Positions 17,265 through 59,300 of a stretch of DNA of 64,000 nucleotides are shown piece by piece (position 1 is the first letter of the stretch; the number at the start of each line of letters is the position of its first letter). Origin of the DNA: Cyanophora paradoxa CCMP329 (Eukaryota; Plantae; Glaucophyta); assembly GCA_004431415.1 (NCBI GenBank), contig QPMI01000432.1, positions 310,001-374,000 on the forward strand, given 5' to 3'. The position numbers were made by a program, and so were the translations under genes. The notes under the pieces were generated by a model, which ran no database searches, was not told where the DNA came from, and worked only from the letters and a program-made list of their open reading frames with translations.

Positions 17265-19090
17265 GAGCTCAAAATCGACGAATCGAAAGCAGAACGGAAC
17301 TAGAGCAGACTACGGTTCGAGGAGCAGACGCTTAATAGCCGCGGACGGGGGCGGCGATGGAGTAGCCCGGGCCCGAGGGGACGGGGCGGGTCTGGGGCGC
17401 GGTGTAGCCGCCGGCGGGGCGGGCCGCGATGCTGTAGCCGGGGCCCGAGGGGACGGGGGTGGTGGAGCGCTGGGGGGAGACGTTGGTGGGGCGGGACGCG
17501 ATGCTGTAGCCCGAGCCGGAGAAGTTGGAGCCCGAGGTCGGGACGTACGAGCTGGCGCCGCCAGCGGGGCTGGCGATCGAGAACGAGCTCGAGGAGCTCG
17601 AGCCGTACGACGAGGAGGACGAGCCGTACGAGGACGAGGACGACGACGAGTAGCCGTGGTTGATGGGCTTGGCGCTGTAAGACGACGAGCTCGACGACGA
17701 GTAGCCGTGGTTGATCGGCTTGGTCGAGTAGCCGTGGTTGATCTGGCCCGAGCCCGACGACGAGTAGCCGTGGTTGATCTGGCCAGACGAGCCGTAGCTG
17801 GACGAGCTCGGGGCGCTGTAGCTCGGGGCCGGGGCGCTGTAGCTCGGGGCCGGCGCCGAGTAGGACGCGGGCGCGCTGTAGCTAGTCGACGAGTACGAGC
17901 CCGGCTTGGACGCGATCGCTGCGCGCCGACCGTCAGCGCTGCGACGCGGGGCGGGGGCGGGGCGGGGCGGGCGGGCGGGCGCACAGTAGCCGGGGCCGGA
18001 CGGGGTCTGCTGGGTGCGCGGGGGCGAGATCGAGGTCGGGCGCGACGCGATGCTGTAGCCCGGGCCCGAGGGGATCACGGTGGTCGAGCGCGGGGGCGAG
18101 ATGCCGCCGGCCGGCTTCGAGGCGATCGCTGCGGCCAAAGTGAGCGGCGGCGCGCGGCGCGGGCGGGCGGGCGGCGGGGCGGGGCGCACAGTAGCCGGAG
18201 CCGAACGAGCCGGACGACGAGTAGCCGTGGTTGATCGGCTTGGCGCTGTAGGACGACGACACCGGGGCCGCGATGGAGGAGGTCGCCGAGTACGAGGCGG
18301 CCGGGGCGGCGTACGAGGAGGACGAGCCGTAGGCCGGCTCCGCGTACGAGGACGAGCCGTACGACGCGGGCGAGCCGCCGACGGCGCGGACGGCGTCGTC
18401 GACGGAGTCGGCGGCGGTGTCCAGGGCGCGCGCAGCCGAGCCGACGGCGTCCTTGGTCGCGTCCAGAGCGCGCGACGCGCCCTTGAGCGCCGACGACGCG
18501 GTCGAGAGCGCGGTCTCAACCTGCTTCATGCCTGCGCGCGCGACGCTCCGATGTCATTGCGCGCGCAGGGGCCACGTGCGCGCCCCCGGCTCGCTGCCTC
18601 ACCGTTGGCCTGGACCGAGAAGGTAATCTCGGCATCAGCAACGAACTTGCGCTCAGTGCTGAACTGGTGGGCCGCGCGCGCCGGGCGCTGCTTCAGGAGC
18701 GCCGCGACGTTCGAGGTCGCCGGGCGGGCGACGACGGGCGCGCCGCGGGTGGAGATGGTGGCCGGGGCCGCAACGACGAACGCGGGGGCCATGGTGTCCT
18801 AGGCTGGCTGCGGCTGCTAGAAGGTCGAACGAACGAGTGTGAGCACCAAGGCACCAAGGCCGAGTTTTGGTACCGGCGCCCCATGGCATTATTGTCCCAA
18901 TGAACCGGCGGGCTGTACCCTGGCGCCGTTGCAACTGGCCGGCTTGCAAAACATCATTGCCGCGTCGAATATAGTGGGTTTCGCCGCAGCCGAAATTCGA
19001 ACCCCGTGCGCGCGCGAGACGTTGGCGCGCGCTCGATCGATCCGGTCCCGGCCTCTGCGCGCGCTGTAGCGCTAGCTAGCGCTAGCGCCG
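17265..19090. repeat. Left arm of a ~1.8 kb inverted segmental duplication (partner 26165-28015)
   Basis: Reverse complement matches 26165-28015 across the CDS, introns, ~300 nt of upstream sequence and part of the 3' UTR. Arm ends are approximate. Confidence 0.9.
17332..18792 (-). CDS. Plastid-targeted Ser/Gly/Tyr/Pro-rich repeat protein, copy A (4 exons)
   Basis: Transit-peptide-like exon 1 (MAPAFVVAAPATISTRG...FSVQAN), heptad-pattern helix, then GYSIA and INHGY repeats. Near-identical to 26455-27914. Confidence 0.85.
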
Positions 19091-19349: not shown

Positions 19350-22184
19350 CTAGATGGTGAGGTCCTTTGCGGGGTCCTTCCGCGGCGGGGGCGCGGGGAG
19401 GGGCACGCCGCCGCCGCCGGCGGGGGCGGCCTTGGCGGGGGGCGGGGGCGGGGCCCCGTTGGGGGCGGCGTGCGAGCCGTTGGACTCCTGCGCGGCGCCG
19501 CCAGCCTTGTGGCCGCCCTCCGAAGTGAACGAGCCCCAGCGGTCGGCCTGCGTGCCGCGGGGGGCCTCAGGGCCACCGCGGCGCTGGGCGGGCGGGCGGG
19601 CGGGGCGGGGGGCGGGGGGACGGACGACGATGGCGGCGGCGGCGGCGGCGCCGTCCTCGGTGCGGACGCGGGTGCCGAAGGACTCGGCCGCCTTCTTGAT
19701 CTCCTCGTTCGCGAAGAGGGCCTTGAGGAGGATCTGGCACTTGGCGATGCAGAAGCCCTTCAGCCCGTACGGGTGCCAGCCCACCTGCCAGGTCAGGCAG
19801 CAAGCTGCGTCAGGGGGAGGGCGGAGGCGGGGGCCGGGCCGGCGGGCGGGCGGGCGGGCGGGCGCGCCTTGAGGCGCTCGACGAGGGCGCCCCAGAAGAT
19901 TTGATCCGTGGTGCGCCCGCTCATGACGAAGTCGTTGGGGAGGACCACCACGGGTCGCCCCGCGTGCAGCGCCGCCTGCACCGTCCCCGCCCCTGCGCGC
20001 CCCGCCCGTTGTTGGCCCGCTGGCGGCCGCGGGGCGAAGGGCGGAGAGCGCGCACCGCCGTGGCAGATGACTGCGGCGCACTTGGGGAAGAGCCAGTCGT
20101 GGGGCACCGGCGACGTCAGCGGGTGCACGTTCGGCTGCCGCGCGCGCCGCCGCGTGAGTGAGGGCGCGCCGCGAGGCAGAGCAGGGCGGGGCCCGCGCGC
20201 ACGGGGATCCTGCAGTTGAGGTACTGGGGTGGCGCGCGGGGCCTCAGCGGCGGGGCGGGGGCGCGTGGGGCGCGCGGGAGCGAGGGAGTCAGGGGGGCAC
20301 CTTCTTGTCGCACTGCGGGGGCGGTCAGCGAAGGAGCGAGCGGCGGGGGCGGGGGGCCCGAGCGGGCTCGCCTGGAGGACGGTCCGGTAGGCGGGGCCCA
20401 TGTTGCCGAGCACGTCGCAGAAGATCTCGTTCAGCGCGCACCGCCGCCCCTCTCCGGGGATCGCGTGCTGCCCGCCCGCCCAGCTGAGCGCGGCGCGGCG
20501 CGGCGCGGCGGGCCGGGCGAGCGGGGCCGCACGCACGTGGGCGCTGCCGAAGCCGATGTAGATGGGCGGCTCGCCGGCGTTCAGGAACTGCAGCAGGTGG
20601 TCCTTCGGGCCTGTCCGGCGCGTCATGGGCCAGGCCGCGCGCCCACGCAAGGAGGAGGCGGCCGGCGGGCGGACCCGGCGTGTAGAGGGCGGCCTCGCGG
20701 AGCGTGGAGGGGCCCACGATGTGCCTGAGGGGCCACCGCGTCAGCTCGGGCGGCCCGCGGCGGCCGGGGCGGGCGGTGCGCGCTCGTTGGGCCGCCAGTC
20801 GAGGGGCTTGGGGATGAGGGCCGAGCTGATGAGGTGCATCACGGGGACGTTCTTCGTGCGGAAGACTGCGCGGCTCGTTAGAACGGCGCCGGCTGGCCCC
20901 GCGAGGCCCCGCGCACTGGCGGTGGGGCTGGTGTCGAGGGGGAGGGCGGGGAGGCCGTTCTGCGGGGGGAGCGGGCCGGTGGGCGGGGGCCGCGGCGGGG
21001 TACGCGGAGGGCGGCGCGGGTACACTCACGTCCTTGCGGCGCTGGTTGACGAAGTCGAACCAGAGGAAGTACCACTGGAACTTCTGCAGGCGGCGGGACG
21101 CGCGCGTCACGCCGCGCCGCAATGCCGTTCTGGCCTGGGTACACCGCACCGAGAACCACTTCCACTTGAGGCCGTTCAGGAACTTCAGACGGGATTGCTG
21201 CGCGGCCGTGAGCGGAGATGCGCGCGGCGCAGGCGCAGGCGCAGGCGCGGCCGCGCACCCCGTCGCCGTAGCCTGCAGGAGCGCGGCGCGGCGGCAGTGT
21301 CAGAGCGCGCGCGCGGTCGGGCGAGCGGGGGTACAGAAAAAGCACGCACCGATCGGGGGGGCGAAGGCGCTGGTGGGGCACATGGGGATGGTGAAGAGAA
21401 CGAAGTAGGGGATCTTGAGGATGTCGGCGATGCTCGGGCCGTAGTAGCTCGCCGGCGTGTTGAGCCCGAGGATGTCCGGATTCCAGCTCTTAGCTGCCGC
21501 TAGAGTACCTGCGCCCGCGTCAGCGCGCCGCTTCGCCCGCCGCCAACCTTCCCGCGCGGGGGCCACTTGCCGTCCCACCACTCTGCGGGCGGCGGAGTCA
21601 GCGGCGCGGCGGGCGGTGTCGCACTCTAGCTGCCGAGAGCTGCTTATGCAGGCAGGCATCTGAGCTAGTGCAAGCTGGGAAGTTCAGCGGTCTGACGAAC
21701 CATGCATCAGCGGCCTGAGGAATCCCTTCGTGCGCGCGTCGCGATTCCACCAGCTCGCATCCTAAACGAAGACAGAGCGATTAGATAACGCACGCAGCCT
21801 CCGCTCAGGCGTGGATGGCGCTTCGCTCATGGGCGCCGAGCGCACCTCCAGCTGACGCCCGGATGGCTTCTCCAGCGCGCTGACCTCATCGCCGCCCACT
21901 GCATGCCGCTGTGAGACGACTGGGAGCGACGAGGCGCGTGCGTGCGGCCCAGCGCGCCTTCGAAATGAACCAGGCCGTGCCTCTCCACAAGCGCCTTGTA
22001 GTCCTTGTGGGCCGCGACGCAGACCTGAAAACGATCAATTCAGCACATTTAAATCTCTTCCGCCTCGAAGCGCCCGCGAATCGCAGACCTCGAAACCACC
22101 CGTCTTCCGCAGAGCGACGCCGACCGCGGCGACGCCTTGGACCTCGCCGCGTGGCCCGACGGCCACGAGCAGAACCCGCGGCAT
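19350..22184 (-). CDS. Sterol 3-beta-glucosyltransferase-like GT-B glycosyltransferase (UGT80/ATG26/GT28-N type), multi-exon; start may lie further upstream
   Basis: RVLLVAVGPRGEVQ, VCVAAHKDYKALVERHGL, FTIPMCPTSAF, LIPKPLDW, FLNAGEPPIYIGFGS, VPHDWLFPKCAAVICHGG|AGTVQAALHAGRPVVVLP, DQIFWG. Confidence 0.88.
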
Positions 22185-22699
22185 GTCGCGGGGCTCCTTC
22201 CTCGGCGATTCCGCTAGGCCGACGGGGGGTACTCTGCTTTGTGAGAATGGGAACGTATGAACTTGGGCGCTCCGGCGCTCACGCTCCCGGGCTCGAGCTC
22301 TGCATCAGATCTTTAGCTCTTACACGCCCGCGGCGCCATCCGAAGCACATCTCGCACTAAAAACTAAGCAACTAAGCTGCAACTTCCAGCGCGGGGTACG
22401 CTCGCTTGAGGGTCCAACCATGGAGTGAGGCCCCCGAGCCGAGGAACGACCCCTCAGGCGATCCAGGGGGCTCATGCCGGTCGCGCTCGCCCGTGCGCCG
22501 CGCCGGCCCAGCATCTGATCGTTGCTGATTTCCGCGCTGACGTCGACCACGGCTAGGCTCCGGCGTTTCGGCGAGCGATGTTAGCGAACTATGGAGCGCG
22601 CTGGAATTGCTTGCGAAGCGCATGGATCGCGCGGAGAGGCGCCTCCCCAGACCTGCGCAGGTCTGCCAGCCCGCAGAGGCTGCAGCCCCGGAAAGCTCA

Positions 22700-23570
22700 C
22701 TTGTGCGCAGATCTCAATGATGAGGCGAGCTCTCACATTGTACACGTACGCCCCGCCCCGCTTCTGACGCCCTGCGCAGCAACCTCCTCGTTGGTGCACG
22801 AGCACGAGGCGCCGGCTCGCCCGCGACGCGCGACCTGACCTTGCTTTCTTGCCAGGCGTATGGGTTTTCCTCTCGCGGTACGAGGTGTACATCCGCCGGA
22901 GCAACCGCACGAGGGGCTGGGCGAGCAAGGTCTGCGGGGCTCCCTCGCCGCGCCCCTCTCTGCAAGCAGTCTTGACGCTACCCCCGCAGTTCCTCCCCCC
23001 TTCGCTCAAGCCCTCTGACTCCTTCTCGGCGGTCGTCTTCGAGGGATACGTGCACGCGCTCCTGCGCAGCTTCCCGTTCTTCATCAGCGCCTACCTCCTG
23101 ACTCGGTCCGCCTGCTCTTCCCTCGCTCCAGCCCCTCTCTGCTGCTCGTGACCTGATGCTTCATGCACGGGGCAGACCACAGCGCTGGAAGCGCAGCCTG
23201 GCCTACTGGCTCGCGGCCACTGTGTCCCTCTATTTCGGTGCTCGCGGCCCCCGCCCTCTGCACTTCCCTCATCATTCGCCCATGTGACCTTGCCTCCAGG
23301 CCTGTTCTCCAAGGTCGCGCCCTGGGTACGCAGGAGCTCCAGCGCATCCCGCGGCGCGCCGCAGCGCGCACAGTCCTTCGACCTGATCATGACGCGCGCG
23401 GCAGTGCTTCCACTTCAACTTCTTCATCACCGTCGCCCTCAACTCGTCCCGCATCACGAAGTGGATCGGCGGGCTCCTCTAATTGAAACGAGTGCTCGCG
23501 GCGTACGCAGTTGCACAAAACGTGTACAGTTTCGCAGTTTCCAGATCGTCTTGCTATGTACTCTGTAAAT
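22700..23570 (+). CDS. Probable coding exons of an unidentified hydrophobic protein (or the 5' part of the downstream kinase-like gene)
   Basis: Short exon-like segments bounded by CAG/GT (e.g. VWVFLSRYEVYIRR, WKRSLAYWLAAT, CFHFNFFITVALNSSRITKWIGGLLIET). No family recognised. Confidence 0.3.
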
Positions 23571-23869: not shown

Positions 23870-25570
23870 CTTGCAGTCTTTCGTCGGCAGCTGCGGGACC
23901 TGGTCGAGTCGGCGCGCCGCCTTTCGGAGCGGGAGATCGGCTCGATCCTCGCTCAACTCGCAAGCGTGATGCGCTCCGCGTCGGCCCGGCCCCCGCAGCC
24001 TGTGCCGGCGCTGACGCTGCGGCGCCGGCCGCGCGTGCGCAGCTCGATCACATCCACAGCGCGCCGGTCGCCGTCTTCGATGAGCGAGGCCTCCGCGTCA
24101 AGGGCACGCTCGCCCACTGCGACCTGACGGCGCGTACCCCCCTTCCTCGCTCCCTTGCTCCCCTCGTCCCCGCCCTGAGCCGCCCCGCAGCTGGACAACG
24201 TTTTCTACGTCCAGCGCGGCGGCCGCATCATCGTTAAGCTGGGGGATTTTGGCATCTGCCGCATCGAGTCCACCGGCGCGAGCTCGCCAGCGCAGGTGCC
24301 CCTCCCCCGCCCCTCCCCAACCCCCCCTCCCCCCCCCCTCCCCTTCCCCCGCCCCTCCTCCCCCCTCCCTTCCCCCGCCCCTCCCCTTCCCCCGACCCTC
24401 CCCCCTCCTCCCCTTCCCCCGCCCCATCCCCCACTCCCCACCTTCCCCCCTCCCCCCCCCCCCCGCTCCCCTCCCCGGTCTTCGATACCCCCGGATTCGA
24501 GCTCGGCCGCCCCTCCTCAGAACGGCTTCGTCAACCTCTCGATCGCACCGGAGGTCGGCCTCACGAGCGGCGCCCAGTGCGACTGGCGGTCGGACGTGTT
24601 CGCCCTGGGCGTGATCCTGCTCTCCCTGTGGGCCGGCGTCGCGTTCCAGTGGGACCGCGTGCGCGCCTCTCTGAAGCGGCGCCGCGCCCGCGCTCACGCC
24701 GCGCCCGTCGGCGCTGGCAGGACGGCACCGACCCGCGGGATCTGGTGCCGGCGCTGGGCGAGGTGCGCTGGGCGGCGCGTGCGCGCCCGCGGCGCCTCCC
24801 GCCGGCCTCTGACACCGTCGCTTCCGTGCCAGGTCGAGGGGGAGGACGGAGCGGCGGGCGACAGCCGCGGGCTCGCCGCGCTGGGGCGCGACCTGCTCAA
24901 CCCCGACCCCGCGAGGTGCGCGAGGCCCCGGCCTGCGGCGGGGGCCCTCCCGCCCCGCCCCGCCCCGCCCCGCCCCGCCCGACGGGGCCGGCAGGCGGCC
25001 CTCCGCGAGGGAGGTGCTGCGGAGGCTCGCCTTGGGCGCTGGCGACGCCGCGCAGGCCCTCCGCGCCCCCGCCGACGGCGCGCCGGCCCCGGCCCCGGCC
25101 CCCGCAACCGCCATCGAGACGCTCAGGCGGAAGACATGGGGTACGCGCCCTTCGCCCCTGCCCCACAAGCTTGTCGCTCGCTGCTGCCGCTGCCCGGCTG
25201 ACGGGGCCCTCAGCGCGGGCCTGCGACCCGCACGCGTACGCGGTCGCTGGGGGCCGCCCGGTGGGCTTCGGGGCCGCCGTCGCGGCCGCGTGCACGCCGC
25301 CGCAGCCGGCCGCAAAGCGGCCGCGGGCGGAGGCCCCCGCGGCGGCTGCCGCCGGGCCGGCGCCCGCCATGCATACGGCCAGCAGCTGCGGTTGGTGGCC
25401 GGCGGCGGCAGCGGCGCAGACCGGGCTCTATGGCCCCGCGGCCGGGCGGGGCACTGTGGTGGCTCGGGAGCTCGAGGCGATGCAGACGCCGTCGACGTCG
25501 CCGCGCATCTCCGCGAATTTCGAAGCTCTTGATCATGATCATGATCATATGCATGTACATGTACATGTGT
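23870..25570 (+). CDS. Protein kinase-like protein (C-lobe clear; N-lobe and both ends uncertain)
   Basis: LRDLVESARRLSEREIGSILAQLAS...DHIHS, HCDLT|LDN, VKLGDFG, IAPEV, WRSDVFALGVIL, LLNPDPAR. Confidence 0.7.
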
Positions 25571-26164: not shown

Positions 26165-28015
26165 CCGCGGCCGTAAGCGCTAGCGCTAGCGCTGGCGCGG
26201 CGCTGGCGCTCGATATCAAGCACGCGCGCCAACGTCTCGCAGTTCGAATTTCGGCTGCGGCGAAACCCAACTATATTCGACGCGCGCAGCAATGATGTTT
26301 TGCAAGCCGGCCAGTTGCAACGGCGCCGGGGTACACCGCCCGACGGTTCATGGGACAATAATGCTATGGGCCGGTACCAAAACTCGGCCTTGGTGCCTTG
26401 GTGCTCACACTCGTTCGTTCGACCTTCTAGCAGCCACAGCCAGCCTAGGACACCATGGCCCCCGCGTTCGTCGTTGCGGCCCCGGCCACCATCTCCACCC
26501 GCGGCGCGCCCGTCGTCGCCCGCCCGGCGACCTCGAACGTCGCGGCGCTCCTGAAGCAGCGCCCGGCGCGCGCGGCCCACCAGTTCAGCACTGAGCGCAA
26601 GTTCGTTGCTGATGCCGAGATTACCTTCTCGGTCCAGGCCAACGGTGAGGCAGCCAGCCGGGGGGGCGCGCACGTGGCCCCTGCGCGCGCAATGACATCG
26701 GAGCGTCGCGCGCGCAGGCATGAAGCAGGTTGAGACCGCGCTCTCGACCGCGTCGTCGGCGCTCAAGGGCGCGTCGCGCGCTCTGGACGCGACCAAGGAC
26801 GCCGTCGGCTCGGCTGCGCGCGCCCTTGACACCGCCGCCGACTCCGTCGACGACGCCGTCCGCGCCGTCGGCGGCTCGCCCGCGTCGTACGGCTCGTCCT
26901 CGTACGCGGAGCCGGCCTACGGCTCGTCCTCCTCGTACGCCGCCCCGGCCGCCTCGTACTCGGCGACCTCCTCCATCGCCGCCCCGGTGTCGTCGTCCTA
27001 CAGCGCCAAGCCGATCAACCACGGCTACTCGTCGTCGGGCTCGTTCGGCTCCGGCTACTGTGCGCCCCGCCCCGCCGCCCGCCCGCCAGCGACGCGCGCC
27101 GCCGCTCACAGCGACCGCAGCGATCGCCTCGAAGCCGGCCGGCGGCATCTCGCCCCCGCGCTCGACCACCGTGATCCCCTCGGGCCCGGGCTACAGCATC
27201 GCGTCGCGCCCGACCTCGATCTCGCCCCCGCGCACCCAGCAGGTCCCGTCCGGCCCCGGCTACTGTGAGCCCGCCCCGCCCCGCCGCGCCCCCGCCCCGC
27301 GTCGCAGCGCTGACGGTCGGCGCGCAGCGATCGCGTCCAAGCCGGGCTCGTACTCGTCGACTAGCTACAGCGCGCCCGCGTCCTACTCGGCGCCGGCCCC
27401 GAGCTACAGCGCCCCGGCCCCGAGCTACAGCGCCCCGAGCTCGTCCAGCTACGGCTCGTCTGGCCAGATCAACCACGGCTACTCGTCGTCGGGCTCGGGC
27501 CAGATCAACCACGGCTACTCGACCAAGCCGATCAACCACGGCTACTCGTCGTCGAGCTCGTCGTCGTACAGCGCCAAGCCCATCAACCACGGCTACTCGT
27601 CCTCGTCCTCGTCCTCGTACGGCTCGTCCTCCTCGTCGTACGGCTCGAGCTCCTCGAGCTCGTTCTCGATCGCGAGCCCCGCCGGCGGCGCCAGCTCGTA
27701 CGTCCCGACCTCGGGCTCCAACTTCTCCGGCTCGGGCTACAGCATCGCGTCCCGCCCCACCAACGTCTCCCCCCAGCGCTCCACCACCCCCGTCCCCTCG
27801 GGCCCCGGCTACAGCATCGCGGCCCGCCCCGCCGGCGGCTACACCGCGCCCCAGACCCGCCCCGTCCCCTCGGGCCCGGGCTACTCCATCGCCGCCCCCG
27901 TCCGCGGCTATTAAGCGTCTGCTCCTCGAACCGTAGTCTGCGCATATTCTCCTGTACTTAGCTCAGAAGGTTCCGTTCTGCTTTCGGATTCTCTCGGCTC
28001 GCGTCAATTTTGAGC
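26165..28015. repeat. Right arm of the inverted segmental duplication (partner 17265-19090)
   Basis: Near-identical exons; indel-bearing upstream region and introns relative to the left arm. Confidence 0.9.
26455..27914 (+). CDS. Plastid-targeted Ser/Gly/Tyr/Pro-rich repeat protein, copy B (exons 26455-26644, 26718-27059, 27121-27264, 27328-27914; 420 aa)
   Basis: The four GT-AG-bounded exons total 1263 nt and form one open frame. Transit peptide, helical segment, 6 GYSIA (+1 FSIA) and 5 INHGY motifs. Confidence 0.88.
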
Positions 28016-28602: not shown

Positions 28603-31600
28603 CTACGAAGAGGGGGCCCCGGCGGCGCGGGAGGGCGACGCCTTGCCCCAGTCGCCCTGCATCACCGTCCGCTGCGCGTGCTGCAGGGGCCCCAGTCAGG
28701 GGCAGGGGGGGCGGGGCAGGCGGGAGGATCGAAGGCCCGGGCTGGGCGGATGGGGAAACAGGAGGGCAAGGAAAAGTAGAGGAATCTTAAACAAGAGTCC
28801 ATTTAGGTCTACCAAGGAACAGCCCATCCAGGTCTCGTCTACCGAGAACCGGTCTGCAGGCGGGCGGGCGGACCTGGCGGAGGAGGGAAACAGAGGAGGG
28901 CAAGGAAAGGAGAGGAAACGAGAAGAATTGCGAGAGTCTATTGGAAGTCTAACTAGAAGAGCGAAACTAGAAGAACTAGAAGTCCATCTTTCCATCTCGT
29001 GCTAAGACAGGAATCTGAGGGATCTGGTCGGGCGGGGGGGGGGGAAGGGCGGGCGGACCTGGCGGAGGAGGGAAACAGAGGAGGGCAAGGGAAGGAGAGG
29101 AAACGAGAAGAATTGCGAGAGTCTATTGGAAGTCTAACTAGAAGAGCGAAACTAGAAGAACTAGAAGTAAGTCCATCTTTCCATCTCGTGCTAAGACAGG
29201 AATCTGAGGGATCTGGGCGGGGAAGGGGGGTGCGGACCTGGCGGAGGAGGTGGTCGGCAAGGACGAGGGCCGTCATCGCCTCCACCATCGGCACCGCCCG
29301 CGACAGCACGCACGGGTCGTGCCGCCCCTGCTCGCGAGAGAGGAAGAGGAAGAGGAAGAGGGGCGAGGAGGGTGGCCCGCCGTCAGCGTAGGGCGGCGGA
29401 AGAATTCGAAGGCAGGGGGGGCGCTCAAGTTATTATTAACGTTTCTATTAACGTTAGAGTCTTAATATGTATTATCTTTTGCATCAGAATCGTCTCGTTC
29501 GCCATCTCTAGAGGGACGGGGGTCACAGGCCGGCCGAAGGGTTCGAGGCTCCCCGCCCGCCTGGCCGAGCGGCAGGCGGCTCTACCACATCTAGCCGCCG
29601 CCGAGCCCAGCCCGGCCCGGCCCGGCCCCTCGGCCGCCCCCGAGGGGGACCCCGGAGAAGGGAAGGAGCAGGGGCGCAGGGGGCGATTGCAGAACTAGGC
29701 GAGCGCAAGAAGGGGTGCGAAGAGAAGGAGAAGGGGGCCCGGGCCGTCTCCCTTTAAAGAGGCCCGCCTAGCGCCCAGGCCGCGTGTCCCCTGAAGCTAT
29801 CCTTTCCTAAGGGCGGCGTTACCATTAACGTTTCTATTAACGTTAAGAGTCTAAATACGTGTTATTTTTTCCATCTGGATCGTTCGCCCATCTGCGCTGC
29901 ACGGACCTTGGCGCGGAGGGTGGTCTCTTCGCCGTCGGAGGTGACGGTGCGCTGCTCGATCGCGATCGTCGAGGTCGGCTTGAAGGCGACCCGCACCACC
30001 TGCGAGCCCGCCGCGTCAGACCGCGCGCCCCCGCCCTCGCCCGCCCGCGTCAGACCCCCGGCCGCGGCCCGGTCGGCCGGGCTCCTCTATTTTATCTATC
30101 CCATCCGCCGCCCCGCCGCCCCGCCCTCTTTGCGATCCGCGTCAGACCGCGCCCGCCCGCCCGCCCGCGTCAGACCCCCGGGCGCCTCTGTCTCATCTAT
30201 CTCATCCGCCGGCCCACCCCGCCCTGGCGCCCGGAAGGGGTACAGGGGCTGCAGGGCGGCGCACGATGTCCTCGCCGTTGGAGATGCCGCCCTGGATGCC
30301 CCCCGAGCGGTTCGTCCGCGTCCGGATCTGAGGCGGGGGCGCCGTCAGCGCGCGGCGGGGCGGGGCGGGGCGGGGCGGGAGGGCGGGCAGGGGGGAGGAC
30401 GGCCTGACGGGCAGGCACGCCGGGCTGGTATAGATTGCTAGATTGATACTTTGAGCCCCCTAGATGCTTGAAAGAGCTTAGAGCGTCTCGGGCGGAGCGC
30501 GCGGCCGTCTAATCTAATCTAAATCTAAAGAGCGCCCTTATCGCCTCCCTGATATGCCTCCCTGAGCCTTGCGGGCGGGCGGGCGGGGGGCGCACGTGGC
30601 CGTCCTGGTCGACGTAGAACTCGTCGTTGTGCTCCTGGCCCGTCAGGAGCGTCCCCTCAAAGCCCGAGCCCACCTGCGGACCAGCGAAGGCCGCGTTCAG
30701 AGAAGGGGCGCTCAGCGTTCGTTCACCAGCGGGGCCGGGGCGGGGCCGGGGCGGGGCCTGGCTAGTGGCGCGGCTCGCTAATGGGGGAGGGAGGAAGGCG
30801 GCGTTTGACGCAGGAGCGCTCAGCGTTCACGAGCGGGGCCGGGGAGGGGCGGGGCGGGGCCGACCTCGAAGCCCTTGGACGCCGGGAGCGACATCATGCC
30901 TGCGAGCGGGCGGGTGAGGGTGAGGCCGGCGGGAAGCGCGCGCTGGTCTGTTCTTCTTCGGGTTCCGAGGTTCTTTGGCTGGCTAGTGGCGCGGCTCGCA
31001 GGGGCGGGCGACAAAGATATGATCCGAGGCGGAGGCGGCGAGGCGAGGCGGGGCCGTGGCCGTGGCCGCGGGGGCGGGGCGGGGCGGGGCGGGGCGGGCC
31101 CTTGGCGAGGTCGGCCTCGAGCTTGTCGAAGACGGGGGCGCCCAGGCCCACGGGGACGCCCCGCGCCACGCACTCCACCACCCCCCCGATCGAGTTCCTG
31201 CGGAGCGGGAGCGGGAGCAGGGGCTGCTTAGGCGGGGGCGCGGGCAGGGAAGCTTGCTTGGGCGAGCGAGCCTTGGTTCTAGCATGAGGGGCGGGGGCGG
31301 GGCGGGGCGGGTGCGGGGCGGACCCCTTCTTGCGGATCTCGTCGATGACCGCGAGCATGCGCTCCGCGGCCGCCGCGTCCGGGCACCGTACGATGTTCGA
31401 CTCCACCTGCGGCGACGCTCACCGAGGCGGCGGAGAGCAAGGGCGGCCGCCCCGCGAGCCTGCTCGAGAGTGACCGCGGAGGGGTCGATCGAGGCCTCCA
31501 CCTGAGAGGCCGGGCTCGACGAGTACTCTCAGTCAGGAATCGGGGGGTACGTGCGCGCACGTCGCGGACGCGCTTGACGTAGCCCACGATCTCGACGCCG

Positions 31601-32694
31601 GCCGCCGCCGCCAGGATCTTCTTGGCGATCGCTCCGGCCGCCACTCTGGAGGCCGGGGCGCCGGGCGTGTCGGGGGCGGATGGGGGGAGCTGGGCGGGCG
31701 GGCGGGCGGGCGCGCTGCCGCACCGGCCGATGGTCTCGCGGGCGGAGGAGCGGCCGCCGCCGGCGACGGAGCGGAGGCCGTACTTCTGGTCGTACGTCAT
31801 GTCCGCGTGCGAGGGGCGGTACTTCACCTGCGAGCGAAGCAGGCGCCCCCAAGCGCGCTCGCTCGGACGGGAACGCGGGCGGCGCCGGAGGGCGGGAGGC
31901 GGGGCAGCGGGCGCACGGCCATGTCTTCGTAGTCGCCCGAGCGCTGGTCCTTGTTCCGCACCAGCATGGCGATGGGCGTCCCTGCGGCCCGCCCGCCCGC
32001 CCACCCCGCTCGGCACGCCGCCCGCCGCGCCCCGCCGCCGCCCGCCCGCCCCGCAGCGCAGCGCACCGGTCGTAAGACCATCCGCCACGCCGGAGAGAAT
32101 CTCGACGAGATCGTCCTCCTTGCGGGGCGTCGTGATGCGGCTCTGGCCGGGCTTTCGCCTGCGGCGCGGCACGTCACGGCCCGACGCGCCCGCGAGGCGA
32201 GCGGAAGCCGCGGGAAGCTCGGAGAGGACGCTCGAACCTGTCAAGCTCCGCCTGGATCTCCTCGACGGTGATCGGCAGCGAGGGCGGGCAGCCATCGACG
32301 ATCACACCGACGCCCCCACCGTGCGACTCGCCGAACGTGGAGATGCGGAACAAATGTCCGAACGAGTTGCCGAGGCCCGCCCGCGTGCGCAGGTCTCCCT
32401 CCGGCTGCGCGCGGGCGTCGAGATATTAGCTGAGCGGCGGTCGCGGATCGGCCAGCGTACCTTCGGGGCCAGACGGACGGCGGCCAGCCGGGCGCAGTCC
32501 ACCTCGCCGAACAGCGCCTCATGACGGGCGGAGCGCACGAACATGCCCGCTCGGCACGGGGCCGGGAGGAAGGCCGAGGTCCGGCGCGCCGCCGGCGCGG
32601 CGCGGGCCCCCGCGGCCTGCCGGCTGCACAGCGCAGACGACGCCGACGGGGCCGCGAGGCCCTGGGGCGCGACGATCGCTGCGTTGCAGAACAT
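28603..32694 (-). CDS. aroC: Chorismate synthase, plastid-targeted, multi-exon
   Basis: Transit peptide [10 protein letters not shown]..., [82 protein letters not shown]|[18 protein letters not shown]...LLRQ|HAQ. Confidence 0.97.
28861..29250. repeat. ~180-185 nt tandem duplication inside the last aroC intron, carrying copies of the exon end and donor site
   Basis: The unit beginning GGCGGACCTGGCGGAGGAGG recurs at about 28867, 29052 and (as the true exon end) 29232. Confidence 0.9.
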
Positions 32695-35505: not shown

Positions 35506-37526
35506 CTACTCGCCGGCCCAGCGCGGCTCGGAGCCGTAGGCGGGCTGCTTGTCGTCGTGGTGCTTGTGCTCGTGGCCGCCATGCCCGTGGTCCACAACGC
35601 CCACGCCGCCGTCGGAGGCGTGGTGCTGCTGCTCGTGGGCGTGGTGCTGTTCGTGCGCGTGGTGCTGCTCGTGCGCGTGGTGTTGGGCGTGGGCGTGGTG
35701 CTGGGCGTGGGCGTGGTGCTGGGCGTGGGCCGGCTGCGTGTCCCGCGGATAGTACTGCGTCGAGTACGAGACCACGGCGTCCCGCATCGGCTCCGGCACG
35801 AGCCTGCGGTCCAGGGCGTGAGGCGGGGGCGGGGGGCGGGGGCGGGCGCGAGGAGGACGGGAGGCCGGCCGGGGCGCACGTCATGTAGATGGACTGATAG
35901 TTCGTCGGCTGCTGCATGATCCAGCGCGCCTGCGGGCGCCGCGTCGGCGGGGCGAGGCGGGGCGGGGCGAGGCGGGCAGGGCGGGGCGCACGATGCCCTC
36001 GGCGGTCATGGAGCGGAACGAGGCCTGCAGCTGCTCGAGCTGCTGCTGGATCTGCATCTGCTGCGTGTTGTACCCCCCCGACGAGCCGTCCTGTCCCGAG
36101 CTGGACGAGCCCGTCGTGGCCGTCCCGTAGTACGAGACCTTCTGCCCGTACTGCGTCTGCCCGTACCCCGAGAGCGAGGCCGCCGAGGCCGCCGCCGCCG
36201 CCGCGTCCGGCGAGGACATCGCGTGCGCCACCGAGACCGACGGCGCGTGCCCGTACACCGTGACCGCGTTGATCGGGTTCCCCTCCGCGTCCACGGGAAT
36301 GTCCGCTGCCGGCCGGCAGGCGCGGTCAGGCCCAGACCGGCGCCGGCGGGAGAGCGCGCGTCGCTCGCACCTTCCGGGCGGCAGCGCTTGCGGCCCCGCG
36401 CCGCCTTGAAGTGGCCCTTCATCTCTGCGAGGAGCGCGCTCGGTGCGGGGCCGGCGGCGGGCGGCGGGCAGACGGGCGGCGCGGCGCCGCACCCTCGGGG
36501 GTGATGTACGGCGAGTACTGCTCAAGGTTCAGGCCGAGCTGCCGTGCGACGGTGACCAGCTCCTGCTTCGTCAACTGCGGCAGGTACCGCACTGCACCGC
36601 CGCCCGCCCGCCCGCCCCCTCAGAGCGCAGCGGGGGGCCGGGCCGGGTCGGCCGGCGGTGCGCACGCGGCTTGTTCGGCTCGTCAGGCTTGCCCACGTAC
36701 TTCTCGCGGCATTGCTGCGGGCAGGGGCGTGAGCGCGCGCGCGGGCGCAGCGGGGCGACGCCAGGCACCTGGTACTCGGGGCAGCGCGAGATCGCAGTCA
36801 TGAGAGCGGACTTGGCCTGGGCGTCTGCGGAATACGTGATGAGCGCGCGTGGCTGCTTGGCAGGAGACGGAGAGCTGCCGGCGCACAGGGGTTCTCGGCC
36901 GTCGTCTTGCCCTTCTTCTTCTTGCGCGTCGGGTCGTCGTCAACTGCGAACGAAGCCCGCCTCAGCGTCCCCGGTGCCGCGAGGCGAGCATTATGGGACG
37001 CAGTTCACGCACGCTGATCCCCCGGGTTCTTGCGCGGCCGGCCACGGGCCTTCTTCGAAGAGTAGCCGCCATCGGAGAGCGGGGTGACAGCCAAAGCTAA
37101 AGGCGCGGGGCTGCTGGAGCCGTTCGAGGACATGCCCACCGAGGTCGAAGCCGATACTGTCTGGTGCTGAGGGTTGGGGACGAGCGCGTAGTTCGAGACT
37201 TGCGGTTGGCTAGTGTAGTACGGCGCGTACAGCTGCCCGTTGCTGGCGGACTGATACTGGCTTGGAGACGGCTGCCCAGGATCTCCTGGGCGAGTTTGAT
37301 AGTACTGCTGCTGAGGTGGCTGCTGCGGAGTCGTCGGCTGGCCCGCCTGGGAGGCCTGTTGCGCGTAGCCGGACGAGGAGAGCGGAAGCCCCGGTGATTG
37401 ATTCGGAGGCGGCTGTCCGTACGCCCCGCCTTGAGGGCCGGAAGCGCCCGGGACGTACGCGGAGGAACCGTAGGATCCTCCAGCCGAGGGCAGCGAGGAC
37501 GCCGGTGGGAGGTGTTGCCAGCTCAT
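35506..37526 (-). CDS. Putative nuclear DNA-binding protein (AT-hook, HeH/SAP-like helix pair, His-rich tail), multi-exon
   Basis: Q/P/S/Y-rich N-terminus, KKARGRPRK AT-hook, RKKKGK basic patch, LTKQELVTVARQLGL, HAQHHAHEQHH repeats. Confidence 0.55.
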
Positions 37527-53324: not shown

Positions 53325-56300
53325 CTAGTCGCCGAAGATTTGGTCCTTGAGGGCCATGATGGCTGCGCGGGCGCGCGCGGGAAACTCGGTCAGAGCGGCG
53401 CGGAAAACGCGCAGCGGGGGAGCTCGAGGGCGGGGGTACCGAGGAAGAGGATGTCGAGGCCGGGGAGGGCGACCTCTCGGAAGGCGCGGAGGAAGAGGAG
53501 GAGCGGCTCCATGCCGAACCAGTCCTGCGCCTGCGAGAGGCCCGTGGACTGGAGCCAGCCCTCGCGCTGGTCCGCCGAGAACTTGAGCCCGTACAGGATG
53601 ACCAGGTACGAGCAGAAGGCCGAGAAGAGCAGCGAGAAGATGTACCCCGCGTAGGCGAGGAACCACGGTAGGGGCTGCGGCGGCGGCGGCGTCTTCTTCG
53701 CCTGCAGCTCGTAGACCCCTGCGGAGCGAGCGGCCCAGCGAGTGAGCGAGCGAGCGAAGCGAGGGCAGCGCAGCGCATGCGCACGGGCGGCGGCGAGGGC
53801 CTGGGCGAAGACGCCCTTGCCCTCGGCCTGCTTCTTGAGCTCCTCGACCTTCTTCTCGTGCTTGAAGCGCTTCATGCGGCGCCGGACGGCCTCCTGCACG
53901 ACCGCCGCGTCCAGCGTCGTGCTGCGGTAGCGGTGCCCGCGCCACGCCGACTGGATCCGCCGCGCCGCCGCCTCCGCGTTCTCGCTGAAGGTCGGCCGCA
54001 GGAAGTGCGGCAGCGGCGCCCCGCCGGCCGCCGGCGAGCCCCCGCGCGGCGCCGGCGCCTCGCCTTTGGCGCCCTTGGCGCCCTTGGCGGCCGCGGCTGC
54101 CGCGACCGCCTCGGCGGGGGTGAGGGGCCGGCCCTTGAGGGCCGCCACGCCGGCCGGGATGGGCGGCGGCTGCGGGCGGTCGGCCATCGGCGGGAGCACG
54201 CGCCGCCGCGGCCGCATCATCTCGCCGAAGGGAAGCGGCGGGGGCGGGGGCGGGGGCGGGGCGGCCCGGCTGCGGGGCAGGGCGTCAGAGGGCGAGCGCG
54301 AGGGCGAGAGAGAAGGGCGGGCGAAGGGAAAGGACGCAAAAGAGGGCGCACATGCCGGTCTTGAGGGCGTGGATCTTGGCGCGGACGGCGTGGCCGCGCC
54401 AGACGCGCTGCAGCATCACCGCCGCCCGCTGCACGCGCTCCGAGTCCGCAGCGGCGGCGCCCGTCTGCGCGGGCAGTGAGCGGTTGGCGCGGGCGCGGGG
54501 GGAAATAGGCGGGCGCACGGGCAGGGCCCAGCGAGCGGCGCTGGACTGCGAGCTGGAGGCCGAGGAGGAGGCGCGGGGCACGGCGGGCGCCGCCGCGGCG
54601 GGGGCCGCCGCCGCCGCCGCCCGGGGGGCCGCGAGGCCCCCTCGGGGGGAGTGTCGGGGGCGAGGGCGAGGAAGCGACGCGAAGGGGCGCCCGTGAGGCG
54701 GGGCGGGGGCGGGACGGGCCCGCGGCGGGGCGGCCCCGGGTGCGGCGAGCCGTCCGAGCCCGTCTGGGAGTCGGCGGAGGAGCCGACGGCGGCGGCGCGC
54801 GCGGCGCGCAGCACGAGCAGCGCCGTGTGCGAAGCCCGCGAACGCCACAGCGCCTGCACGCGCCCCGCCGCCTCGTTCGGCGAGCGCGGCGCCGGGCGGC
54901 TCGGGCGCGGGACCGCGGCGGCGGCCGCGAGGCGCGGCGCGGAGCGGGCGGCGTGGGAGAGGCCGCCGGGGGCCGGGGCGTGCGCGGCGGCGATGTGGGA
55001 GGACGGGACGGGGCGGCGGGGCCCGGGCCCCGCGGCGGGGGAACGCCCCCGAGGGGCTCGTTGCGGGCCGCGAGGGGCAGGTGGGAGGGGCTCTCGGATC
55101 CCGAGCCCGAGCCGCTGGACGAGCCGCGCGGGCCCGGGCGGCGTCGGCCCTCGCCGGCGGCGCCCGCCAGGAAGTGGGGGATGACGGGCCCGACCTCGTG
55201 GCCGGACGCGGGGCGCGGCTGCCGCCGGGGCCGCGGGGCGCCCTCGCCGGGGCCCGCGGGCGGGGGCGGGGGCGGCGGGGGCGCCCCCGGCGGGGTGAAG
55301 ATTCCGATCCCGACGGCCCCGATGGCGTTGAAGCCGTCGGTCAGATCCTCGTCGCTCTCCGCCCGCGGGAGCGGGAGCGGCGCGCCGCCGGCCGCCGCGG
55401 CGCGCACGAGGTCGCGCGCCGCGCGCTCGGCCCGCGCCTGCGCCTCGATCTTGGCCCAGTTCTTGCGGGTGCGGTGGCCCCGGTAGGTCGCCTGGATGCG
55501 CGTGACGGCCCGGGAGATCGGGTCCGGCACGCCCGGCCGCCGCGCCGACGCCCCGCCCGCGCGCACTTGCATGCGCACGGCAAGCGCCAGCGGCAGCGCC
55601 TGCCCGTCGGGGCCCCGCGCCGAGGGCGCCCCCGCCCGGAACGTCACCCCGCCGCCGCGCGCCGTCTTGCTCCCGTCGCCACCACCGCCGCGCGCCGACT
55701 TGCCGCCGTCGCCGCCGCCGGGGCCGGCCTTGCCGCCGGCGCGGGCCGTGTCGGCGGTGACGACGAGGCCGACGCCGGCCTTGGAGGACACGGGGACGGC
55801 GGCCTCCGGGGCCACCTTGCCGTCCGATCCCTCCTTCCCGTCCTTCCCGTCCTTGCCGCCCTTCTTCAGGTCCTCCTCCTCGCCCTCGACGACGGCGAAG
55901 ATGGTGCGGCGGCGGGGCGGGAGGACGGCCCCCGCGCCGATCATCGGCGGCGGCTGCGGGCCCGTCCGCTTCGCCAGCGCCGGCGCCACCTTCCGGAACA
56001 TGTACACGAAGAAAATCTGGACCCGGCCCTCGTCAGAAAAATCATTTTTTTTTTTGGGGGGGGGGGGTGGAGTTTGCCTTGGCGGGGAAGAGGGCGACGG
56101 CGGCGATAACGGAGGATATGATCTTGCGGGTCCAGGCCCCCGCGCTGTTCGCGTCGCCCGTCCCGAAGAAGATCGCGTTGATCGCCAGCGTCCCCGTCGC
56201 GAAGGCGAGCAGGCAGGTCAGGCGCCGCGGCCGCGTGTACGGGTCGTACGGCTCGACGACGAAGATGGAGATCAGGATGTGGTTCGTCGTGAACATGTGC

Positions 56301-59300
56301 CGCATCCCGACCTTGAGCTTCGCCCAGAAGCCCTTCGTCTTGGCGAGCTCCTCCTTGCGCAGCTGGTTCGGGGTCTTCATAAAGGCAGTGGCCTTGGCGG
56401 CGCGGAGGTTGCCCCAGCCGGCGCCGCCCTGCGCGCGGGCCGCCTTGGGCTGCAGCGCCTCCACCTCGGCGATCTTGGCGGCGGCCGCCATCTTCTCCTT
56501 GAAGGCGCGGCGCTGCTTGCGGTCGATCCACCAGCCGACGGCGCAGCAGACGAGGTAGAAGAGCCATAGCGCGCCGATGACGAAGATGCAGCCGGCGTTG
56601 TAGATGTCCATCGTGAGGAACAGCGAGGCGTCGCCGATGGGGTCCACCGAGTTGAAGGTGGGCAGGAAGTCCTCGGCGCCCTCGGTCTCCGTCGCGAAGT
56701 CGGTCAGGTGCCAGCAGAAGCAGACGGCCATGACCGTCCCGTTCGGCCCGTCCCGCGCGATGTCGCCCAGGGCGCAGCCCTTGCGCGAGAGGATCCCCGC
56801 CGTGTGGTTCACCCACGTGCACGCCGGCACGCCTGCGCGGGGAAGAAGAGTGAGCGCGGCGGAACAGAACGGAGGGACGAGCAAACGGAAAGAGACGCAC
56901 CGGTGGGGGAGACCTGGGGGACGTAGAGCACGACGGGCTCGGTGGAGGAGAAGGGGATCTCGGCGCCGGCGGCGTCGTGGAGGGTCAGCGACGCCACGTT
57001 GCTGCCGAGGCCCTTGGCGTTCTTGAGGAAGGTGAAGAGGTCCGAGGGCGTCTCCGCCTGCACGATGTCGATCGTGTTCGACGCCGCCTGGTCCGACTGC
57101 GTGAAGTCCGCCGCGCCCGAGGCGGCCCCACTCTCGCCGCCCTCGCCGGCCTGGCGGATGCGGCGGCCGTGGGCGTCCGTCGCGCCGCCGACGCTGCCGG
57201 CGGCGAGCGTCCCGTTGCCGAAGTCGCTGCCCGCGAGCTCCGCCTCGAGGCCCGAGAGGCGCCGGCGCCGCGCGGCGGCCACCGTCTGCCCCGCGTTCAT
57301 CGGCAGCTTCATGCTCGTCCCCTGCGCGCGCGCGCGCCGCCGCGTCGCGTCAGAGGCGAGTCGGCGCGGGCAGAGCGGAGCGGGGGGGCGCACGGGGAGG
57401 CCGTTGACGCCGGTCGTGTTGGTGACGGTGCCGCCGACGGAGGCGTCGTCGGCGCGCTGGCTCGTGATGGCGACGAGGGGCGTGGAGAGCTGCTGCGCGT
57501 TCTGCCCGGGCACCGCCTGCGCCACGATGCCCTTGGCCACCACGGAGGCCACCAGCGAGACGGTCTGCTGCGACCGCCGCACTTCCTCCTTCATCAGCGC
57601 CTCCTCCTCCTCCGGCGTCAGCGGCGCCGGCGTCGGCCCGGGCGCCTCCGTCGGCGCCGGCGCCGCAGTCGGCTGCGCCGGCGCCGGCGTCGGCGTCGGC
57701 GCCACAGGCGCCACAGGCGCGGCGGCGGCGGCGGTGGGCGCGGCGGTGGGCGCGGCTGTCGTGGAGTTGGACGCGGTGGAGTTGGACGCCGTGCTGTTGC
57801 TTGCCGTCGCGTTCCCGGTCGCGTTGGCCGCCAGCAGCGGCGTCGGCGTCGGCGTGACCTGCAGCAGGTGCCGCAGGAACGGCCGCCGCACGGCGCCCTG
57901 CGTCGCCGCGCCGCCGCCGCCGGCGCCGCCCGCAGCGCCCTCGCCCGACGGCGGGGCGGGGAGGACGGTTTCGGGGGCGAGGAGGAGATGGCGCAGGGGG
58001 GCAGCGCCCTTGCCCGAATTTTTGTTGTACTTTGCGGTGGCGACGTTGACGACGGAGATCTGGATCGAGGCGATGACGTTGTTGACGACGTTGACGACGG
58101 ACTGCGCGGCCGAGAACGGGATCGCCTGCACGGCCTTGGCGTTGGCCGCCGCGGTCTGCACCGCCTCCGTGGTCGTCGCGTTGGTGCCCGTCTCGTTGCG
58201 GGCCGTGTTGGTGCCCGACTTGGAGCCGCCGGTCACGGCCGACGTGAGGAGGCTGCCGACGATGTTGAGCGACGTCTCGCGCATGGCGGGCGTCAGCGTC
58301 TGCGGGTTGCCCGTGATGGCCGCCACCGCCGACACGCCGGCCGCCGCCGTCTCGCCCGTCACGACGGTCACCGTCTGCGTTGCCACCAGGATCGCCGAGA
58401 GCATCGTCCCGCGCACCGCCTGCTCCTTCGCCTTGTCCGCCGCCGTCGTGATCGTGCTGACGCCGGTGCCCGTGCCGCCGGCGCCCGTGCCCGTGCCGGT
58501 GCCGACCGAGACGGTGGCGCCGCTCCTGTCCGTCTGGACGCCGGCCTTGGTGTTGAGGACGCCGCCGATGGTGTTGGCGAGGAAGAAGACCGAGTCGAAG
58601 GAGCCGGTGTTCTTGAGGGCCGTCGCCTGGCCGGCGACGGCGGCGATCTTCTCGAGGGAGACGGTCACGGGCTTGCTCGTGATGCGGAGCGTCTCGACGG
58701 CGGCCGAGCCCGACTGGTCCACGATCGTCATGTTGAGCTCGATCTGGTTGTTGGGGAAGCCGCCGGCGGGGAAGGGCCCCAGCACGAACGTCGACTTCTC
58801 CTCCGGGGCGGCCGGGAAGTAGGCCACGGGCGAGGCCGGGGAGGTCCGGTAGGCGACCTGGTACTTGATGGGGAGGAGCTCGGGGTCGGCGGCCCACTGG
58901 TCCGCCCGGATCTCGAAGTAGGAGCTCAGCATGTCGCCCTCCGTCGCGTTCAGCTCGACGAAGCCGCCCGACGGCGGCACCGCCACGCGCACGAGCAGCC
59001 GCGCCTGGCCCACGCCCGTCTGCGGCCCCGGCCCGCGCGGCGTGAGCGACGGAGGCGGGGCGGCGGGGCGGGGCGGGGCGGGCGGGCGGGTCGCACGGTG
59101 TCGTCGGCCCAGAGCTTGGCGAGGACGGCGGGCGAGGCGGCGGCGTTGGCGGCGGCGCCGGCGGGGTTGACCTTGGCCTTGAGCTGGAAGGTGTAGGAGG
59201 CGCCCGGGACGAGCGCGCCGGCGCGGACGACGAGCGAGCTGCGGTAGCGGTCCGGCACGAGGAGGACGGCCGGGTCGTCCAGGTCGATCACCGACTTGGG

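Follow-up and report, generated by a model that had tools for sequence, protein, structure and literature searches.

An abundant, orphan protein of the Cyanophora paradoxa plastid, encoded by two nearly identical nuclear genes, is the best candidate identified for a scaffold of the Rubisco body in glaucophytes. A role of some kind in this central body appears likely, and the reading favored here, with some reserve, is that the protein is a direct Rubisco linker, the multivalent scaffold of the plastid Rubisco body. The central body of Cyanophora is a mass of Rubisco with neither a shell nor a traversing thylakoid, and, being shell-less, needs some cohesive agent. Carboxysome kept from the endosymbiont's past, or pyrenoid: its nature has been debated for decades. 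The protein is the first concrete candidate for the way in which glaucophytes build it, and the question could now be addressed with one recombinant protein and purified Rubisco. Should it be the linker, CcmM would have been swapped for a host-made scaffold in a lineage of primary plastids where rbcL and rbcS remain a plastid-encoded pair, and a linker would be added for a cyanobacteria-like Form IB Rubisco; it may also reveal how a pyrenoid without starch sheath or traversing thylakoid keeps a carbonic anhydrase in position. No glaucophyte linker or named central-body scaffold was found in the literature available without subscription; among linker reviews of 2026, one leaves glaucophytes out and another names them once, in passing.

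The gene lies in a stretch of 64,000 nucleotides from strain CCMP329 (contig QPMI01000432.1), referred to as the window, which is about 70% GC, intron-dense and eukaryotic. Two copies of the gene and the segment duplicated with it are placed as follows:

26455-27914, forward strand: gene copy A (splice model), corresponding to 9509_cds:2612 of the older gene set, with peptides in exons 2 and 4
17332-18792, reverse strand: gene copy B, intact, with exons 18792-18603, 18531-18190, 18128-17985 and 17918-17332
26223-27941, unstranded: duplicated segment of about 1.7 kb, comprising the gene and about 230 bp upstream; its partner at 19031-17305 is 97% identical and the flanks diverge

Copy A is made up of four exons on the forward strand (26455-26644, 26718-27059, 27121-27264 and 27328-27914), separated by GT..AG introns of 73, 61 and 63 nt, which when joined give 420 codons and one stop. 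The coordinates in the initial annotation, which was made from the DNA alone, were right, and its 420-residue precursor is encoded by this spliced four-exon gene. Exon 3 is supported by its splice sites, by both copies and by the paralog described below, and is without a matching peptide; the older model, 9509_cds:2612, lacks Gly64 and skips exon 3. Introns 2 and 3 each interrupt the Ser codon of a GYSIA motif (see below), and the similarity between these two introns is little higher than that between introns 1 and 3. The antisense frame of the Ser-rich region of exon 4 (27593-27721) reads as a strongly acidic peptide, which is probably a by-product of codon use.

Copy B differs from copy A at 9 of 1263 coding nucleotides, of which seven are synonymous and two produce V219T, the sole amino-acid difference between the encoded proteins. 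The protein is indeed encoded twice, as had been proposed, by two intact copies in a head-to-head inverted duplication that is recent. An allelic or assembly artefact is unlikely to lie behind the pair, because the flanks of the copies diverge and the Cyanophora genome is reported to be haploid. The further proposal that the duplication supplies dosage is a weak argument, since duplicated sequence is so common in this genome (34.7 of the 99.9 Mb of the assembly).

From the N-terminus onward, the precursor of copy A is organized in the following features:

26455-26640, forward strand: stroma-targeting transit peptide, residues 1-62, with Phe at position 5 and ending Val-Gln-Ala
26720-26869, forward strand: alanine-rich heptad helix, residues 65-114, from AlphaFold and a heptad table
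26729-26785, forward strand: conserved 19-residue helix core, residues 68-86, compared by hand with the paralog and with LCIB tails
27014-27031, forward strand: first INHGYS motif, residues 163-168, read from the sequence
27053-27347, forward strand: first GYSIA triplet, residues 176-232, net charge +5; the same triplet and spacer motif occur in the paralog
27348-27437, forward strand: YSAP repeats, residues 233-262, uncharged
27462-27599, forward strand: four INHGYS motifs in a Ser-rich block, residues 271-316, near neutral and prion-like, with no predicted structure
27720-27911, forward strand: second GYSIA triplet, residues 357-420, net charge +5, reaching the C-terminus; a peptide covering residues 339-376 has been identified

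The presequence has Phe within its first 10 residues, Val at -3 and Ala at -1, as is typical of the organism, and shows no visible second signal for lumen or periplasm. Its presence had been predicted correctly, with an end placed at about 63 residues that most likely falls after Ala62. In the helix that follows, Leu, Val or Met occupies every a position of the heptads, Ala most of the d and g positions, and Ser or Ala often the e position; Leu/Val/Met at a with Ala at d and g is typical of tightly packed alanine coils. AlphaFold, run exon by exon without an alignment, predicts one continuous helix from about residue 66 to 115 (pLDDT 90-96), in agreement with the heptad helix of about 50 residues that had been proposed. 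The rest of the protein is mostly below a pLDDT of 50, with no secondary structure predicted in exon 4, and this, together with composition, supports disorder outside the helix.

Residues 114-420 are composed of 32% Ser, 12% Gly, 12% Pro, 11% Ala and 9% Tyr, have a pI of 9.7, and contain a single acidic residue, which bears out the earlier description of a low-complexity region almost free of acidic side chains. Trp is absent from the whole protein, and 23 of the 29 tyrosines stand in a Gly/Ser-Tyr-Gly/Ser context, as in prion-like domains. GYSIA occurs at residues 176, 201, 224, 362, 386 and 410, and INHGY at residues 163, 273, 285, 294 and 311; by comparison, no comparable 5-mer appeared more than three times in any of 5000 shuffles of the region. 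The five INHGYS motifs are as first counted, and so are the six GYSIA copies with the last at the C-terminus, except that this sixth copy lacks the Lys or Arg that was said to precede Pro. The GYSIA copies form two triplets and not an even array (period 23-25 residues, gap 138), and the spacings of INHGY are 9-17 and 110. The spacer motif of the GYSIA repeat, Ile/Val-Ser-Pro-x-Arg-Ser/Thr, may resemble a phosphorylated stretch before the EPYC1 helix, a likeness that was given no weight.

The Cyanophora paradoxa plastid proteome of Kohler et al. 2015 (PMC4510345) includes the protein, unannotated, as 9509_cds:2612. Four labelled peptides, located in exons 2 and 4, were obtained from isolated plastids and the entry stands in the list of nucleus-encoded plastid proteins (PMC4510345). 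Plastid import, which had been set beforehand as a test by which the proposal could be refuted, is supported by these peptides. They begin at Ala85 (the most N-terminal), 99, 102 and 339, starts that we infer to be internal cuts and not the mature end, because a peptide beginning at residue 62 or 63 would span Gly64, which the listed sequence lacks, and because the N-terminus of the paralog was mapped just before its helix. A mature start at Ala85, if true, would remove the conserved helix core.

When plastids were washed with Triton to remove the periplasm, the protein was retained at a ratio of 1.22, compared with 1.20 for RbcS, 1.12 for activase and 1.06 for RbcL, and periplasmic entries dropped to 0 or to values under 0.5. 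A periplasmic location is excluded by this retention, which cannot tell the central body from the stroma. Repeat proteins rich in Ser, Gly, Tyr and Pro are often components of walls or matrices, which would suit an envelope, peptidoglycan or other structural protein with no tie to carbon fixation; given a presequence of the stroma type only and the failure of the periplasm wash to deplete the protein, such a function is scarcely probable.

On column, the protein amounted to 26.1 fmol from intact and 21.1 fmol from Triton-washed plastids. The corresponding pairs are 95.6/66.9 for RbcL, 80.4/63.5 for RbcS, 51.5/38.2 for activase, 5.2/4.4 for HU and 107/84 for ApcE, and the mean of all proteins is 14 fmol. 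These label-free values correspond to 2.2-2.5 chains of the candidate linker per L8S8 holoenzyme, which may be an overestimate, because the abundance scale is compressed at its top (ApcA reads 185 against 107 for ApcE) and RbcL may therefore be underestimated. A linker-like abundance nevertheless holds, the figure being near the twofold excess of CsLinker (6.24 µM against 2.95 µM of holoenzyme, or about 2 per holoenzyme). Among the retained nuclear-encoded entries examined (table parts 1 and 11-17), in which sequences are shown to about 400 letters and with small dropouts, it is the only abundant low-complexity repeat protein. Phycobilisome linkers and Calvin-cycle enzymes, too, occur in amounts that span 26 fmol.

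Abundance likewise bears on two further readings of the protein. It might be a scaffold of the plastid nucleoid or of RNA granules, which would hold nucleic acid via its basic Ser-Pro-x-Arg repeats and condense via its Tyr-rich region. A pI of 9.6, three Ser-Pro-x-Arg motifs (which we take to recall the SPKK minor-groove motif) and a FUS-like pattern of Tyr would be in keeping with such a role. The net charge, though, is just +11 over 359 residues, there is no RGG, RRM or HU-type domain, the protein exceeds plastid HU fivefold, and the LCIB-like helix (see below) stays unexplained, all of which leaves the nucleoid with little probability. Less probable still is a spacer of the phycobilisome or thylakoid surface. 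Cyanophora does possess many nuclear-encoded phycobilisome linkers, at 20-100 fmol, and linkers of this kind often carry disordered Tyr/Arg-rich arms; the candidate, however, has no PBS_linker or CpcD domain in Pfam, no corresponding PDB match and no membrane anchor, and amounts to about 0.5 copies for each phycobilisome (with ApcE and ApcF both at 107 and two of each in a complex).

Searches for homologues of the candidate linker were made by individual exon. None was found in a library of 5.8 billion sequences (exons 4 and 2, with query length limiting), in metagenome and viral scans, in bacterial and archaeal genomes, or by exact look-up. Pfam and NCBIfam revealed no domain for the exons scanned, and the PDB gave only generic coiled-coil matches for the helix and nothing for the other parts. 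As the libraries lack even the Cyanophora protein itself, these blank results are uninformative on other glaucophytes. Linkers are typically lineage-specific orphans, and the orphan status of the candidate would match that habit. A profile of the repeat, compared with 1.84 billion representatives, gave one match, P0001 (L001:3205-3702; E 2e-4), which was rejected because the match is to the spacer only and the ORF is a repetitive singleton on a bacterial contig; it appears to be a repeated element of bacterial DNA that was translated spuriously, and has no relation to the candidate. Weak matches to viral spike heptads and to tropomyosin were set aside as generic coiled-coil likeness. A likeness of GPGYSI to the SHIPPO or PG-rich microtubule-binding repeat was dropped as well, there being no Pfam match at E up to 1.

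The "carboxysome-like" part of the initial proposal is unsupported, in that no CcmM or CsoS2 domain was found: Pfam and NCBIfam gave no RbcS-like domain, gamma-CA domain or CsoS2 repeat in the exons scanned, and the repeat profile matched none of the CcmM chains among PDB entries (E up to 10). The idea of a remnant of the RbcS-like domain of CcmM was rejected. The Trp-containing Rubisco-binding motif of the EPYC1 and PYCO1 families is absent, with no PDB or library match. Nor are there helical stickers of the type sought by FLIPPer; the repeats are rich in Pro and Gly, with no helix predicted, and the FLIPPer definition calls for a spacing of 20-120 residues, to be compared with 23-25 and 138 for GYSIA and 9-17 and 110 for INHGY. 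By sequence, the candidate linker lies outside the EPYC1, PYCO1, CcmM, CsoS2 and phycobilisome-linker families.

The plastid proteome contains a paralog of the candidate, 12104_cds:4323 (PMC4510345 Table S2, unannotated), which is plastid-located and has its own transit peptide and the same helix. Over residues 68-86 the helix core is identical at 16 of 19 positions (compared by hand), and the paralog also contains one GYSIA triplet with the conserved spacer motif, as well as YSAP repeats. The helix and GYSIA module are kept, and the presequence and Ser tracts diverge. At 1.5 fmol from intact and 2.4 fmol from Triton-washed plastids, the paralog is about 9-17 times less abundant than the candidate and, with a Triton ratio of 2.36, relatively enriched. 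INHGY is not in the modelled, visible part of the paralog, whose model ends at Gly-Tyr; the model looks truncated, and an intron may have been missed at this point. These comparisons modify the sticker-and-spacer picture first drawn for the protein. Its repeats stand, but the paralog keeps the spacer within the GYSIA repeat as well as the motif, so that what is conserved is a repeat of about 24 residues and not a short sticker in a random spacer; INHGY does not occur in the portion of the paralog that is visible.

A second recurrence of the helix is in the LCIB-type carbonic anhydrases, and it is new in this analysis. Two stroma-type LCIB proteins, 25875 (of which 54037 is probably the missing N-terminal fragment) and 37097, carry after the catalytic domain a helix that matches the 19-residue core, with 10 and 8 of 19 residues identical and BLOSUM62 scores, calculated by hand, of 41 and 33. 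In both, the residues at a, d and g agree and those at e mostly do, and the exposed positions differ. The tail helix is absent from a third LCIB, 53135, which has a twin-Arg signal. With the core alone as query, a random background the size of the table should yield a score of 41 on 0.02 occasions and a score of 33 on 0.7. When the entire helix is aligned locally instead, some five matches scoring 41 would be anticipated per table, with P about 0.08 among eight CCM proteins. The long Ala-rich coiled coil of 38366 scores about 26 on the core and about 38 on the whole helix. It is important to emphasize that the core was picked out after the LCIB match had been seen, and that supplement sequences were compared by hand; because of this post hoc choice and the small dropouts in the listed sequences, the match is suggestive only of a tie to the CO2-concentrating machinery. 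A link to Rubisco activase, which has two GGYS motifs in its N-terminal extension where the whole table has 18 other occurrences of GYS, would be weaker still.

The LCIB match raises the possibility that the protein forms a peripheral layer of the central body, or a self-assembling matrix, that positions LCIB without binding Rubisco directly, with another factor, for instance activase or Rubisco itself, responsible for condensation. The clearest sequence link of the protein is to LCIB tails and not to Rubisco, most of its tyrosines lie in the self-associating context noted above, the LCIB/C of Chlamydomonas collects at the periphery of the pyrenoid, and activase is very abundant (51.5 fmol). 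Even so, the protein is 2-3 times more abundant than the two helix-bearing LCIBs together (about 11 fmol), the conserved basic GYSIA triplets have no counterpart in LCIB, and electron microscopy reveals no encapsulating layer, and an LCIB matrix of this kind is considered unlikely.

Other entries and features noted in the course of these comparisons deserve mention. The twin-Arg LCIB, 53135_cds:10437 (PMC4510345 Table S2), is present at 40 fmol and is 44% lower after Triton before normalisation; it is a candidate for the lumenal or periplasmic carbonic anhydrase of the Cyanophora CO2-concentrating mechanism. A cupin-like plastid protein, 26300_cds:6234, has an N-terminal patch of Ser, Tyr and Gly like the low-complexity region of the candidate, and this protein or the long Ala-rich coiled-coil protein 38366_cds:8304 (both PMC4510345 Table S2) could be a further central-body component. 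Cyanophora RbcS contains Asn-Gly-Tyr-Ser after its first helix, an INHGYS-like sequence that is probably a coincidence. The nuclear proteins 16151 and 37902 have tandem N-terminal repeats that we take to be CP12-like.

By analogy, the nearest working model for the candidate linker would be PYCO1 of Phaeodactylum tricornutum, a protein with prion-like domains in which the Tyr motif GTGYNP drives self-association and a separate Trp motif, KWSPR, binds RbcS (PMC10288592); neither motif is described as a helix. Like PYCO1, the candidate has disordered, prion-like repeats, two motif types and non-helical aromatic stickers, and Gly-x-Gly-Tyr is common to GTGYNP and the GYSIA repeat. PYCO1 has its Trp motif and serves Form ID Rubisco, whereas the candidate would serve a Form IB enzyme, lacks Trp and has an N-terminal coiled coil, and homology between the two was not detected. 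Because PYCO1 binds Rubisco by its other motif and not by the Tyr motif, the likeness favors condensation more than Rubisco binding. A further point against a linker is that the stickers are non-helical and without Trp, in which they differ from EPYC1, from CsLinker and from the motif by which PYCO1 holds Rubisco.

The candidate linker shares other properties with EPYC1 of Chlamydomonas, CsLinker of Chlorella and SUPA1 of Ulva: all are plastid-targeted, basic, rich in Ser, Ala and Pro, disordered and lineage-restricted, with five or six stickers and (for CsLinker) about two chains per holoenzyme. The stickers of these three are helical and spaced evenly, about 50 residues apart, whereas those of the candidate are Pro/Gly-rich and 23-25 residues apart in two triplets, and its only helix is the single N-terminal coil. 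In Chlamydomonas the pyrenoid is organized through motifs common to partner proteins. In carboxysomes, one scaffold, CcmM or CsoS2, condenses Rubisco and recruits carbonic anhydrase. This double role is proposed for the candidate too, the docking of the anhydrase more tentatively, but its gene is nuclear, contains introns and has no bacterial relatives, and the Cyanophora body has no shell. The hornwort RbcS-STAR (reviewed in PMC13655443) offers a precedent for a coiled coil that builds a condensate, as proposed for the candidate; STAR is fused to RbcS, whereas the coil of the candidate is on a separate protein and the RbcS of Cyanophora is plastid-encoded and has no extension.

The binding steps by which the protein would act as a direct linker, all of which we infer, can be outlined as follows. 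Rubisco would be held by the two basic GYSIA triplets; within a triplet the repeats would engage a single holoenzyme and so provide avidity, and the long neutral region between them would reach a second holoenzyme. Tyrosines of INHGY, YSAP and the SYS/SYG sequences would add self-association, like the Tyr motif of PYCO1, and the N-terminal alanine coil would bundle several chains and so raise the valency. More tentatively, the coil may pair with the tail helices of the stromal LCIB proteins and thereby keep carbonic anhydrases at the body.

A fuller form of this proposal, tentative and on balance doubtful, is that the glaucophyte central body rests on a two-part scaffold of independent origin. 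Non-helical Tyr repeats would condense a Form IB Rubisco of the cyanobacterial type, an alanine zipper shared with the tails of stromal LCIB proteins would both oligomerise the protein and dock the anhydrase, and the GYS code would extend to activase. If true, the logic of the carboxysome, with Rubisco and anhydrase on one scaffold, would have been reached from host-made parts of the pyrenoid type.

The two gene copies lie among the following features of the window:

19600-22500, reverse strand: glycosyltransferase family 28-like gene (weak Pfam match), between the two copies
about 22650-23500, forward strand: small membrane-protein-like gene, between the two copies
23900-25500, forward strand: protein-kinase-like gene (weak Pfam match), between the copies, with no evident plastid presequence
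28862-28983 and 29047-29168: direct repeat of 122 nt with 99% identity, located at the chorismate synthase 3' end
29214-32550, reverse strand: gene for chorismate synthase, carrying a Met-Phe-Val presequence; the plastid proteome lists the processed N-terminus as 39838_cds:8861 and a C-terminal fragment as 39525_cds:8379 (PMC4510345), which confirms Cyanophora as the source
35509-35841, reverse strand: exon with an 18-nt tandem repeat and a His/Gln/Ala-rich tract
56000-64000, reverse strand: very large gene encoding transmembrane segments along with stretches of Ig/filamin-like and REJ/polycystin-like character, read from the sequence

The 122-nt direct repeat is possibly a local duplication or an assembly stutter. 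IQ-like motifs are found at 53750-55530, near the very large gene.
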